This document shows positions 18,250-47,276 of a stretch of 64,000 nt of DNA, in pieces. Source of the stretch: Bugula neritina (lineage: Eukaryota; Animalia; Bryozoa); contig OZ037771.1 of assembly GCA_964035545.1 (NCBI GenBank), positions 14,383,133 to 14,447,132 on the forward strand, given 5' to 3'. Position 1 is the first letter of the stretch. Each line of letters opens with the position of its first letter. The translations under genes and the position numbers were made by a program. The notes below the pieces were generated by a model. That model did not search any database, was not told the origin of the DNA, and was given only the letters and a program-made list of their open reading frames with translations.

Positions 18250-21200
18250 ATGATGAGGGATGAGTCTTCTGGATCCCAGGCTTCAGTCAGTCAGGATACT
18301 GAGGCTAAAATCTGTCAAGTTTTCCTCCCATCTTATTCAGGTGAGTTTCTTACTATTATGACTTGCACTAGCTACTAGTATGACTTATACTAACTACTAG
18401 TATGATTAATACTAACTAGTGCTGTGACTAATACTAGTAGTTAGTATGACTAATACTAGTAGTTAGTATGACTTATATACTAACTACTAGTATGATTAAT
18501 ACTAACTACTGGAACTGCTAATATTACTAATGATGATTACTGCTATTACTAATACTAACTACTGCTATTACTAATACTAACTAGTGCTATTTCCATTGAC
18601 TGGCAAGCTACTGATACAACTGGTACTATTAGTTGACCATATCTTACGCTTGGTCTGGTATAGCCAAAGGGGGAGAGGGTTGAGTGATTGGGAGGGGGGA
18701 GGGTTGGGGGATGAGGGTATTGAGAGTTATGTAATGAGTCTCAGTTTTTAGTCAGCTTTAAAGTGGCCCTCTTTGTTTCTAACTGCTGCCATGCGCTGTT
18801 GGTAATTAGCCAATCAGTGAACAGTTATAAATCATATCTCAGACAGATTTCTGTGAAACACACTCCGAGCTGCTTCATCTGGCAGCGGTATTTTCAGAGT
18901 TTATTAACCCCAAAGCACGTGTTTATGTTTGTTTAATATGTACTTAATTGGGCTGCCAGCATAATGAGGGATATCTGCATGTGTGCTATTTGGTTGTGCA
19001 AATAAATAAGAAATTAAAAGAAAGGAAAATATTTTGTACACTCCAGTAAAGCTTTCTACTGACTACTGGGCTACTGAATAAAGCCATAGAAATTATTTCT
19101 TAGCTTTATGCATTTTCTTTTTATGGTAGGCAGAGTGGGTACTATGCATACTAGCTAGAGTTGACAATATATACCAGCTCAAGTTAGCATTATATATACT
19201 AGAGTTGGTTGAATTTTGGTTTGGTGTGTGACTTGAAAGCTTATAGTGCTACTACTAATACTAATACTAATAATACTAGTACTAGTACCACTGCTACTAG
19301 TGCTTATAGTTCTACTTCTAATACTACTAGATACTATATATTATAGTACTATTGCTACTGCTACAACTGGTGCCACTACTTTTATTACCACTACTGAAAT
19401 GTAAATTATATTAGCTGTATTAGGATGTTACAAACTCAACTCATCAATTAACAGCTCCCAATAACGCAGCTTATTTGTATTGACAGTTTATAGTAAGTGG
19501 ACATAATATGCAGTTATAATATATTGGAAACATGCATAAACCATATTGAAAATTTATATGTCACATTAAAAACTATAAAATATATCGAAAAACATATTAG
19601 TGTTATATATTAAAAACATATAGTATATTGGAAAGCGCTTAGCAAGTAACAAAAATGTGATGGTTTCGAAAAATAGTTTATTTTGTGAAAAACATGATTA
19701 AACTTCTTGGAATGTTGTGAAGCCATCGTTCATTATCTTGTGTGACATATTAATTTTTATTACATCATCAAAGTTGTCTTTTCAGCAGCGACTGGCAGCT
19801 CCAGAAAGCCTCAATCCTCACGAACTGGTTATCAAGGGACTGGTGCTTTGAAAAACAGTTCTAAACTTGCGAATGCTTCAAGAAACAACTCTAAGTTGAT
19901 TACGCAAAGTAAGAAACATCCATCATCCTCAACGATCTCTCCAGGAAGTACTAGCTCTACTTTGATCTCTACACCGAGTCCTAGAAAGTCTGTTAGATCT
20001 CTCGCACTCAGTCGAAGTCCAAAGATTGTAAACGTCACCCCATTGAAAAGCACTTTGAAGTATCCAGGTAACATTGGCTTGTTCTTTATTTCTATGGTTC
20101 TTTGAGTTAAGAATATTTCTAAATTAAAGTTGGAATTTAAATCCATGAAGTTTCAAAACTATTTAGTGCTGAATTCATAATGTTCAAATTTCTACTCCGT
20201 CTATATTACTTATTAGGCAGTTTTGAGCAGTCTCATTTTTAATCATTGACAGTCTTCAATGGCATGACCTTCTTCATGTTATGTTATGTGAAATGCATGT
20301 GACTTGAGAATGGTGTAGTTCATGGTCTCCCATTTTTTCAGTAGGTATAGTCAAACATGACTTCTCAAGAAATTGAAAGAATTGTTTGAAATCCATTGAA
20401 ATTTGAATGTTGCATCTAAAAACTATTTTTATGTGGAAAATAATGAAAAGTGGGGTTCACTTTTTGTTATGAAATATTTCTAGCGTTTGAAACTACTAAG
20501 TTTTACTTTGTGTGTATTTCAGTTCATACTGCTACCCTGTCAGATGCCTTCAGCTTGAACATCAACTCACCAGGTCAGTCCTGGAGCTTTTACAGCTTTC
20601 ATGTTTACGTCAATTAGTTTTAGAGTTGTCATTCCACTTTCATGGTGAAAATAAATCAAACTGGGATACGAATAAAATAGCGGTAACAGAATGATATTCA
20701 GTTATAACATCACTCTGAAATACAGCTATAGAAATATTTTAATAGAAGTTGCTAATATAAATTGCCCAACCTTAACTTTCAAATGCTCCCCAAAAATTAT
20801 TTTAAAATATTCATTATGTAAACTAATATGAGAGTAGCTACTAGACAAGGTAGAAATGATGGTCAACAGACTAGACTTTCTACATTTAACATCTTATTTC
20901 ATGTCGCTAAACTTGCTGTGTGAAGTTGTCTTTCCTTGTGTACTATTAGGAATTTAACTTATATATATCTTGTTTGCTTTTTCATTTATCCCTTCAATTT
21001 GTTTGGGTAAATCGAATTCAGTTGTGCCTAAATCTAACAATAACAAAAATGTTGGCAAATCAATTTTTTTTACACATATACTTTAATATAACTATAGTAT
21101 GTTAAATGTATGCTAGCAACATAGCCACACATCAAACCTAAGACGATTCACTTTGTTCAGGTGTGAAAGCTGCAAGTACAAACAGCGTCAAAAACCGTAC

Positions 21201-21974
21201 AGGCAGTTCTCAGTCTATATCTGCATCCGGTGGGGCTGTTAACAGATACTTGGTTACCGTACCAAACCTCAGACTGGCTGTAAGATCAGAGGGAGATCTA
21301 TACAACCACCCGTACTACTACTCTCAAAAACATGTGGCTAAGGCTAAAAGTCGTAACCGCTGGTCACTGCTTCCTGTACTATCTCACACCGCTGAGGGGT
21401 TCGGCTCATTCAACGGCTCAAGTGGGCATAACTCCAAACATCTGTTTGAAGAGTTCACTCGCAAAGGAAGTTCAAGTCATCTTGGTAAAGACTATGAAAC
21501 AGATGAGGATGTGTTGCAGGTTTTGTTCGAGGACCCGGAGTACCCCTCCCCTACTCAGCAGAAAAAGTTAGTTCCCCCTATATGTTATTTTCCAATGAAG
21601 TTTAAAAACATTCTTCAACTGTAGTTCTGCTTGTAATAAGATTAGTTCTAGCTTTCTACAATATACTGTATCAGAAACAGTTCCAGACCAAACCATGCTT
21701 GGCAAAAATTCATTTTAAAAAGTGCAGATAACTTCTCTTGTAAAGTAAGTGATTGTGAAAGATTTTCATGTTGCTAATAATAAGTCTTGCAACTTATTAC
21801 AGACTTGTCAGTAAGCCTCTAAAAAGTAACAGACCTGCCAAGTTACTTAATCGCAATCATTCTCAAAGGTATAAGAGACCTGCCAGAAATGCTAACAGCA
21901 AACACACTTTTCCACCGAGTCCAAGATTTCGAGTGAGGAAGAAACAAGTTTCATTCTTGCTACCGTATCGTCCA
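18250..21974 (+). CDS. Five-exon Ser/Lys/Arg-rich low-complexity N-terminal module ending at a phase-0 donor
   Basis: Exons 18250-18340 (MMRDESSGSQ..., phase 1), 19786-20067, 20523-20573, 21161-21566 (phase 2) and 21803-21974 (...FLLPYRP|gtgagt) join in one open frame with canonical splice sites. Confidence 0.7.
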
Positions 21975-22048
21975 GTGAGTAGCGATCTTCTTGTTTATAA
22001 TCTGGTGTATCAGTTATGGTCATAGTATATGTGACTGATAGCTATAGG

Positions 22049-22373
22049 CTACTACTACTGCTAGTACTACTGCTACTGTTACTGCTACTACTACTGCTAG
22101 TACTACTGCTACTGTTACTGCTACTGCTACTGCTACTGCTACTGCTACTGCTACTGCTACTGCTACTGCTACTGATACTACTACTACTACTACTACTACT
22201 ACTGCTACTACTACTGCTAGTGCTAGTGCTACTATATTACTACTACTACTACTACTACTACTACTACTACTACTACTACTACTACTACTACTACTACTAC
22301 TACTACTACTACTACTACTACTACTACTACTACTACTACTACTACTACTACTACTACTACTGCTGCTGCTACT
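22049..22373. repeat. (CTA/CTG)n microsatellite
   Basis: Visible run. Confidence 0.95.
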
Positions 22374-46679: not shown

Positions 46680-46940
46680 TCTCTCTCTCTCTCTCTCTCT
46701 CTCTCTCTCTCTCTCTCTACCTCTCTCCATCTCTCCCTCTCTCCATTTCTCCCTCTCTCCCTCTCTCCCTCTCTCTCTCTCTCTCTCTCTCTCTCTCTCT
46801 CTCTCTCTCTCTCTCTCTCTCTCTCTCTCTCTCTCTCTCTCTCTCTCTCTCTCTCTCTCTCTCTCTCTCTCTCTCTCTCTTTCTCTCTCTCTCTCTCTCT
46901 CTCTCTCTCTCTCTCTCTCTCTCTCTCTCTCTCTCTCCTC
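46680..46940. repeat. (CT)n microsatellite
   Basis: Visible run. Confidence 0.97.
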
Positions 46941-47071
46941 TTTGTACCAGCTTAGGTTTTATCTGCTCTAATATTTCTCGACTCTCAATAAATTACACTC
47001 TTCGAAGCTTTGTTTCTATTAAAATTATTATGACCCATCAGTTAGAAAGCATTTATAATCTGTTGCTTTAG

Positions 47072-47276
47072 GGTACGAGATCCGGAGGCACTCGTTCTGG
47101 ATGTCGTATGGACCACTATCACATGAGACGGAGATATTTGCATGCCGGACTCGCTGGTGCTGCTCTAAATGGAGATGGCCTTATGTATGACCTTGATGAT
47201 GACCTACTGGAGGAAGATCCATTTGCTGCCGATGATGTCATGCTGGATGATGTCAACATAGCTGAGATCATGGGAG
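47072..47276 (+). CDS. Putative shared exon (GTRSGG...DLDDDLLEEDPFAADDVMLDDVNIAEIMG)
   Basis: tgttgctttag phase-0 acceptor and G|gtgagt phase-1 donor; coding-like composition with an acidic tract. Confidence 0.75.

Follow-up and report, generated by a model that had tools for sequence, protein, structure and literature searches.

How a single downstream exon might be supplied with many different protein beginnings is the question raised by a locus of Bugula neritina, whose genome is AT-rich and 216 Mb in size. The window, that is, the whole stretch of DNA analyzed, comprises 64,000 nucleotides (nt) of the forward strand of assembly GCA_964035545.1 (contig OZ037771.1:14,383,133-14,447,132), and its + strand holds all features of interest from ~18 kb to 62 kb. 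A series of short open segments here precedes an exon at 47072-47276 that leads on into a TIR-like gene. On the comparisons reported below, at least eight short, unrelated, strongly basic ATG exons upstream of this one shared exon are under protein-level selection. We think it fairly likely that they serve one TIR-like gene as alternative first coding exons, arrayed upstream of the acceptor at 47072 to which each of them would be spliced. One gene would then probably make many proteins differing only in a small, positively charged N-terminal tag.

A preliminary description of this DNA had listed segments of this kind by eye. All of those listed do start with ATG, stay open, and are followed by GT in phase 0, and every coordinate was correct. 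Three conserved ATG exons are added to that list (37777, 41898, and 55148). The candidates upstream of the shared exon, referred to below by their first positions, are as follows.

24688-24723, + strand: listed ATG exon, 12 amino acids (aa), phase 0, donor GTAAGA; candidate
26523-26651, + strand: first exon, 43 aa, phase 0; a basic tail comes after a hydrophobic motif rich in Gly and Trp
26783-26818, + strand: listed candidate second mini-exon, AG..GT borders, phase 0 to 0
30015-30017, + strand: listed bare ATG, then GTGAGT; no information content, treated as unsupported
31583-31636, + strand: listed ATG exon, 18 aa, phase 0, donor GTTAGA, in-frame stop 9 nt upstream; candidate
34447-34533, + strand: first exon, 29 aa, net charge +10, phase 0, donor GTAAGT
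36699-36794, + strand: first exon, 32 aa, net charge +12, phase 0, donor GTGAGT
37038-37136, + strand: first exon, phase 0, 33 aa rich in Arg, His, and Lys; its donor GTTAGT reads GTGAGT in the relative; in-frame stop 9 nt upstream
37777-37800, + strand: tentative exon added here, 8 aa (MGEHHSKR), phase 0, donor GTAATC, inside a highly conserved 161-nt block (37707-37867)
39380-39571, + strand: first exon, 64 aa, net charge +11, phase 0, donor GTAAGT, in-frame stop 9 nt upstream
40305-40523, + strand: first exon, 73 aa, Arg/Lys run at its start, phase 0, donor GTAACC, in-frame stop 9 nt upstream
41898-41954, + strand: first exon added here and unlisted earlier, 19 aa, His/Lys-rich, phase 0, donor GTAACT
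43753-43902, + strand: proximal first exon, 50 aa, net charge +14, phase 0, donor GTAAAT

The listed peptides are mutually unrelated, as had been described: all-against-all BLASTP, together with BLASTN of the exons and their flanks, returned nothing above chance. Their basic character is likewise borne out, since every first-exon peptide is net basic (+2 to +14, pI 9.8-12). In every variant, the last exon of a more distal module that begins at 18250 among them, the residues that would immediately precede the shared exon are net basic, and three first exons begin with Met-Gly followed by basic residues. The further proposal that the segments are GC-richer islands can be retained only in part; several exons coincide with such islands, but many islands contain no exon. 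The array is not built of repeats. The only genome-repeated pieces in it are a satellite copy at 35271-35755 and a piece of a short interspersed element (SINE) at 31860-31917, neither of which overlaps an exon. The donor of 34447 is itself the first unit of a 19-mer tandem repeat (GTAAGTATAGTTTAAAAAA, 6.4 copies, 34534-34655), which yields six near-consensus donors in succession at 19-nt steps; part of this repeat is kept in the sibling species introduced below.

Open segments running from ATG to GT and at least 84 nt long number, by phase, 13/3/5 on the + strand and 1/4/2 on the minus strand between 22.4 and 47 kb, a distribution that by itself speaks somewhat against chance. Coding status was assessed against two contigs of a sibling species (L009 and L010), which cover window positions 34116-43526 with 8.8-11.2% mismatches (mean identity to the window 0.877, gaps counted); the reading frames had been set beforehand by the preliminary description. 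Seven exons were pooled, namely the listed 34447, 36699, 37038, 39380, and 40305 and two exons added here. The proportions of nonsynonymous (pN) and synonymous (pS) differences were 0.021 and 0.147, a ratio of 0.14 (binomial p=2.3e-9 vs a neutral split). The ratio is still 0.14 without the two exons found through conservation, while frames +1 and +2 of the pooled exons give ratios of 0.74 and 4.5 and non-exon blocks give 0.83, values that appear neutral.

The individual exons behave similarly. Across 34447, 36699, and 37038 there are six differences in 282 nt, all synonymous and two per exon (85/87, 94/96, and 97/99 nt identical to L009, respectively), so that the protein of 34447 is identical in the two species. 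Past the donor of 36699 identity is 0.40, and it falls past the donors of most exons. For 39380, comparison with L009 gives pN 0.033 and pS 0.197 (pN/pS 0.17); for 40305, comparison with L009/L010 gives pN 0.038 and pS 0.176 (pN/pS 0.22), and the open reading frame (ORF) of this exon matches protein P0008 at 91% identity. Exon 41898 carries two synonymous changes and one nonsynonymous change. The block 37707-37867 is so conserved that the reading frame of 37777-37800 cannot be told. Within the same block, an ORF at 37741-37785 starts MGCAASC, a myristoylation/palmitoylation-like beginning; it overlaps the MGEHHSKR exon in a different frame, and G|GTGAAC may serve as its phase-1 donor. As this locus shows, comparison with a sibling genome can, through frame-specific selection, validate exons down to 87 nt in length when no RNA data are available.

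An unbiased scan for highly conserved stretches found the exons again, plus a few non-coding blocks; between 34 and 43.5 kb, the conserved blocks included no further AG..GT coding exon. Two of the non-coding blocks lie near exons.

34204-34364, strand not assigned: candidate promoter, a conserved non-coding block that precedes exon 34447; 2 differences in 161 nt vs the sibling
42613-42753, strand not assigned: conserved non-coding block ~1 kb upstream of exon 43753, containing TGACGTAG, 2 differences in 141 nt vs the sibling

Conservation of the exons in other species, which the preliminary description had named as a check, was found for seven of those listed, all kept as coding (26523, 34447, 36699, 37038, 39380, 40305, and 43753). 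The distant relatives compared were L003, L008 (from the same species as L003 or a very close one, and extending ~1 kb further upstream), and the GC-richer L012. A protein homology search with the ORF at 26502 gave no match; a later metagenome scan led to L012, where the counterpart of 26523-26651 (L012:3759-3893, tblastn 3e-14) has the ATG, the motif HFLGGPLGGWAGIGW, the basic tail, and a phase-0 GT. A counterpart of 26783-26818 was sought in L012 and not recognized. In L003 and L008, counterparts of 43753-43902 are 62% identical over 52 aligned positions and keep the ATG and the phase-0 GT; in L003 the counterpart lies ~2.1 kb upstream of the shared-exon homolog on the same contig. L008 also contains a collinear counterpart of 41898-41954, with an ATG, the sequence M-N/D-V/I-Y-G, a basic tail, and the border AAG|GTAA. 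For both 26523 and 43753, conservation in the distant relatives begins at the ATG.

That these are first rather than internal exons is indicated by their upstream borders. The ATGs of 18250, 26523, 31583, 37038, 39380, and 40305 are each preceded by an in-frame stop at a distance of 9-24 nt, so that these are first coding exons, and most exons have no AG in phase between the upstream stop and the ATG. The locus thus shows what defines variable first exons, an own ATG and donor without a usable acceptor, together with a common downstream acceptor (47072) of compatible phase that is coding from its first base. The exons of the constant part, and one further ATG exon among them, are as follows.

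47072-47276, + strand: shared exon, 68 residues, basic start and then an acidic stretch
55148-55235, + strand: ATG exon added here, downstream of the shared exon; starts MGKH, probably phase 1, donor uncertain in the window
55696-55740, + strand: short acidic exon, phase 1 to 1, AG/GT borders, open, picked by reading
56468-56494, + strand: short acidic exon, as the preceding
56729-56812, + strand: short acidic exon, as the preceding
57299-57409, + strand: short acidic exon, as the preceding
57714-57885, + strand: TIR-like exon, defined by borders and phases, 53-63% identity to the paralog on C2
59843-60020, + strand: TIR-like exon, as the preceding
60274-60409, + strand: TIR-like exon, as the preceding
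60838-60987, + strand: Ser/Thr/Pro-rich linker exon, phase 1 to 1; the gene continues beyond

The shared exon is preceded by AG, is open from its first base, and has the phase-0 acceptor and phase-1 donor ascribed to it earlier. A search of 1.8 billion representative proteins with its 68 residues matched only short ORF fragments, four in number and all from relatives; none was a full-length protein or carried a name. The similarity of these fragments begins at the first codon past the acceptor, 12 codons ahead of the first ATG in the exon, and the same first-codon start of protein conservation is seen in P0001, P0003, and the C2 paralog. In L006, the sibling-species contig used for this exon, 16 nt differ while only 1 of 68 residues is changed, and conservation upstream ends ~30 nt before the AG. 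Coding conservation from the acceptor onward therefore marks an internal exon that needs an upstream phase-0 exon for its start codon. The exon is flanked by simple repeats: a (TC)131 microsatellite (46680-46941) ends 130 nt upstream of its acceptor and is much shorter in the sibling species, and a 17-mer tandem repeat of 31 copies (47318-47860), also present in the sibling, starts 42 nt past its donor. Exon 43753 begins (MRRYLHGHRSGA, 43753-43790) in a manner resembling MRRRYLHAGLAGA in the shared exon (47123-47160), and this resemblance, which recurs in relatives (tblastn E ~0.15-0.4), may reflect an old internal duplication.

Downstream, the exons from 55696 onward fit the phase-1 donor at 47276, as had been proposed, with AG/GT borders, open frames, and phase 1 to 1. 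The ATG exon at 55148 has 58% identity over 26 aa to L003:8211-8288 (E=1.6e-7), and the L003 copy ends G|GTAAAT in phase 1; on this evidence, the exon could join the phase-1 exons from 55696. The TIR assignment of the constant part is less secure. Searches were made exon by exon, and in that form Pfam gave no match at E<=1 for exons of the TIR-like part or for the shared exon, a PDB sequence search (two single exons and a two-sequence profile) gave no TIR chain, and the locus is not among the genome-wide matches to PF13676 and PF01582. Neighbors in a protein language model (Atlas) are all TIR clusters for exon 59844-60020 (0.89) and SEFIR/TIR_2 for exon 57716-57883 (0.80), though at such scores these are leads only.

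Two tandem repeats lie in this part of the window. A 17-mer repeat (60452-60644) directly follows the stop of the ORF that reads through exon 60274, and a 21-mer repeat of 49 copies (62133-63164) is open in three frames on both strands and yields the window's longest ORFs.

If first exons are dispersed far upstream of a + strand gene, the intervening DNA should carry the strand bias of + strand intron, as is predicted by a transcription unit with distal first exons. The AT skew of the array, outside exons and repeats, is -0.073±0.011, compared with -0.078±0.018 and -0.086±0.025 in introns of the TIR-like gene; it is +0.072±0.017 in a minus-strand neighbor gene and -0.009±0.024 in the spacer at 12-17 kb. 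This intron-type bias (T over A) is continuous from ~18 kb to 62 kb.

The 18250 module would mark the distal end of such a unit. The stretch 18250-21974 splits into five exons, with AG/GT borders, open throughout, and phases 0-1-1-1-2-0.

18250-18340, + strand: module exon 1
19786-20067, + strand: module exon 2
20523-20573, + strand: module exon 3
21161-21566, + strand: module exon 4
21803-21974, + strand: module exon 5, strongly basic (+16), ending in phase 0 at GTGAGT

The module is Ser-rich. A Pfam search with two of its exons gave no match, and no paralog of it was found in the genome.

A second TIR-like gene lies on the minus strand of C2 (C2:32056000-32120000, loci L013-L019), with TIR-like exons 53-63% identical to those described here. 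Its homolog of the shared exon has the same phase-0 acceptor and phase-1 donor, and a homolog of 43753 (pairwise E=7e-7) precedes it by 2.6 kb. Beyond that, still farther upstream, five more strongly basic ATG..GT phase-0 ORFs are picked out by a composition filter.

C2:32097094-32097195, minus strand: basic ORF, composition filter
C2:32094599-32094796, minus strand: basic ORF, composition filter
C2:32082015-32082104, minus strand: basic ORF, composition filter
C2:32080221-32080343, minus strand: basic ORF, composition filter
C2:32115291-32115389, minus strand: basic ORF, composition filter

Net-basic segments in this region number, by phase, 8/1/3 in sense and one in total in antisense. These candidate ORFs would suggest that the array design predates the duplication. 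A supposed likeness of 37038 to a His/Lys-rich C2 ORF was discarded, as BLASTP produced no alignment.

These observations would fit a single + strand transcription unit of ~45 kb, with alternative first coding exons between ~18 kb and 44 kb, each contributing its own ATG, a distinct polybasic peptide of 8 to 73 residues, and a phase-0 5' splice site. The first exon of a given transcript would be spliced to the first acceptor downstream, at 47072, since the exons in between offer no usable in-phase 3' splice site, and these would be removed as intron. The choice of start site, and so of promoter, would decide which basic tag is made, with the junctions and the promoter for each exon being inferred. 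The constant part would then consist of the basic-then-acidic stretch, the acidic phase-1 exons, and the TIR-like domain, and a start at 55148, in an exon that is probably phase 1, would yield a product lacking the shared exon. The most likely function of the tags would be to send one signaling domain to various membranes or compartments, in the manner of the basic or lipidated N-termini of TIRAP and TRAM.

Other arrangements of the same exons can be envisaged. We regard it as rather unlikely that 43753-43902 alone is the first exon of the TIR-like gene, with the other mini-exons serving as first exons of other transcripts (such as small-protein genes) or being spliced to unrecognized exons and with the 18250 module forming a separate upstream gene. 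Exon 43753 is the only one found both beside the shared exon in a distant relative (L003, one contig) and in the paralog, and the ORF of the module can end at 22025 if its last donor is unused. Nevertheless, the GTs that close the tested exons are all conserved and all in the single phase compatible with 47072, the conserved blocks between 34 and 43.5 kb yielded no additional AG..GT coding exon, the strand bias is unbroken over ~18-62 kb, and the C2 paralog has the same pattern. Use of the exons in series or in combinations, in mRNAs from one distal promoter near 18 kb, seems improbable. The strand bias would suit one long transcript from ~18 kb, and both 37038 and 41898 have an in-phase AG just upstream of the ATG; yet the stops upstream of six ATGs and the want of an in-phase acceptor in most exons do not permit read-through in series, and conservation in distant relatives starts only at the ATG.

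Only a slight chance is given to 5' ends made by spliced-leader trans-splicing to AGs before the ATGs on one long precursor, in place of separate promoters. An AG does occur 0-8 nt upstream of the ATG in 34447, 36699, 37038, 39380, 40305, and 41898, but 26523, 43753, and 55148 have none close upstream, Rfam detects no spliced-leader RNA in the window, and the downstream mini-exons would still need skipping; we also know of no spliced-leader RNA in this animal group. That the segments are chance ORFs in a long intron, chosen by eye, is scarcely credible for the set as a whole: 30015 is trivial and 27 phase-0 ATG..GT segments shorter than 90 nt occur on the + strand, but the frame-specific purifying selection (p=2e-9) and the deep conservation of 26523, 41898, and 43753 speak against chance, and for eight exons the two together rule it out. 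Only 24688, 26783, 30015, and 31583 may yet be chance segments.

Several points nevertheless weigh against an array of alternative first exons. A search of public sequencing runs over 37301-47300 yielded one DNA run and no RNA run, and a shared promoter motif was sought among the exon flanks and not found. Exon 37038 has a possible in-phase acceptor (tAG|AAGGGGATG) and might sometimes serve as an internal exon; for 41898, whose AG is similarly placed, entry from upstream is likewise conceivable. Several donors (GTAACC, GTTAGA, GTAAAT) are weak, and four listed exons (24688, 26783, 30015, and 31583) have no comparator sequence. The basic ORFs on C2 are candidates chosen by the composition filter alone. 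The 18250 module could be a separate gene, as its ORF stops at 22025 if the last donor is unused. Finally, the TIR identity of the constant part is a putative lead from model neighbors, and the gene is named TIR-like only. Of the variable-N-terminus TIR locus originally described, what stands is the coding nature and first-exon status of the segments, their unrelated and basic peptides, the phase-0 acceptor, and the intron strand bias; a TIR domain was not recovered by Pfam or PDB searches with single exons.

An array of alternative first exons joined to 47072 would have partial precedents. Clustered protocadherin genes and UGT1A have variable first exons that are driven by individual promoters and joined to constant exons. 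The likeness lies in first exons that lack acceptors, in the joining of the cap-proximal donor to the first constant acceptor, and in promoter choice setting the isoform. The variable exons of those genes are, however, ~0.9-2.4 kb long, mutually paralogous, and encode whole domains, whereas those described here are 24-219 nt long and have no mutual similarity. Because its first exons are not paralogous to one another, the locus is, as judged from sequence, nearer to plectin than to the protocadherin/UGT1A subtype, and plectin is the closest analog. At the 5' end of plectin (PLEC), some dozen first exons are used alternatively, each being spliced to the same exon 2 and providing a short isoform-specific N-terminus (PMC8468861). 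Both loci place many short, unrelated coding first exons before one common acceptor, and the isoforms here would likewise differ in a small N-terminal peptide. Plectin differs in being a vertebrate cytolinker with experimental junctions and promoters; the present locus is a TIR-like invertebrate gene known from DNA, and its tags are all polybasic.

For the possible role of such tags, the closest comparison is with TIRAP/Mal and TRAM, in which a short basic lipid-binding or myristoylated N-terminal motif before the TIR domain sets the membrane of signaling (PMC6901815). A basic N-terminus likewise precedes the TIR-like domain here, and the Met-Gly starts of three exons, followed by basic residues, add to the likeness. 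Vertebrates use separate genes with one N-terminus each, however, whereas a single gene here would provide at least ten; the sequences showed no similarity to TIRAP or TRAM, and both the TIR assignment and lipid binding are putative. To our knowledge, arrays of alternative coding first exons are confined to a handful of vertebrate genes, none of them encoding a TIR-type signaling protein, and a full-text literature search for alternative first exons together with the TIR domain returned nothing relevant. It is possible, though doubtful at present, that the TIR-like gene and its paralog encode a conserved repertoire of a dozen or more isoforms that differ only in a polybasic or lipid-modifiable address tag according to promoter use, one locus then doing the work of the separate vertebrate sorting adaptors TIRAP and TRAM and bringing a single signaling domain to many membranes or compartments. 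Were the junctions true, an invertebrate would diversify an innate-immune-type signaling protein by way of tiny charged N-terminal tags and not by gene duplication, and the locus would offer some dozen short natural peptides, a compact collection whose targeting properties could be tested directly.

The remainder of the window contains few other features. A neighbor gene on the minus strand (3662-9884) consists of exon-sized ORFs that read like armadillo-type repeats, and a 233-aa ORF at 95-796 had no match in Pfam. ARAGORN and Rfam found no tRNA genes or Rfam families in the whole window. Pieces of a SINE-like element are present at 31860-31917 and ~61430-61545; its 58-nt core recurs at 97-100% identity at dozens of genomic sites. 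By eye, the copy at ~61.4 kb appeared tRNA-like, although neither program reports it. The satellite at 35271-35755 is a copy of a ~480-nt unit, with ~70% identity to long tandem arrays elsewhere in the genome (C5:208-211 kb, C6:295-298 kb, C8:13.23 Mb, and C2:192-194 kb).

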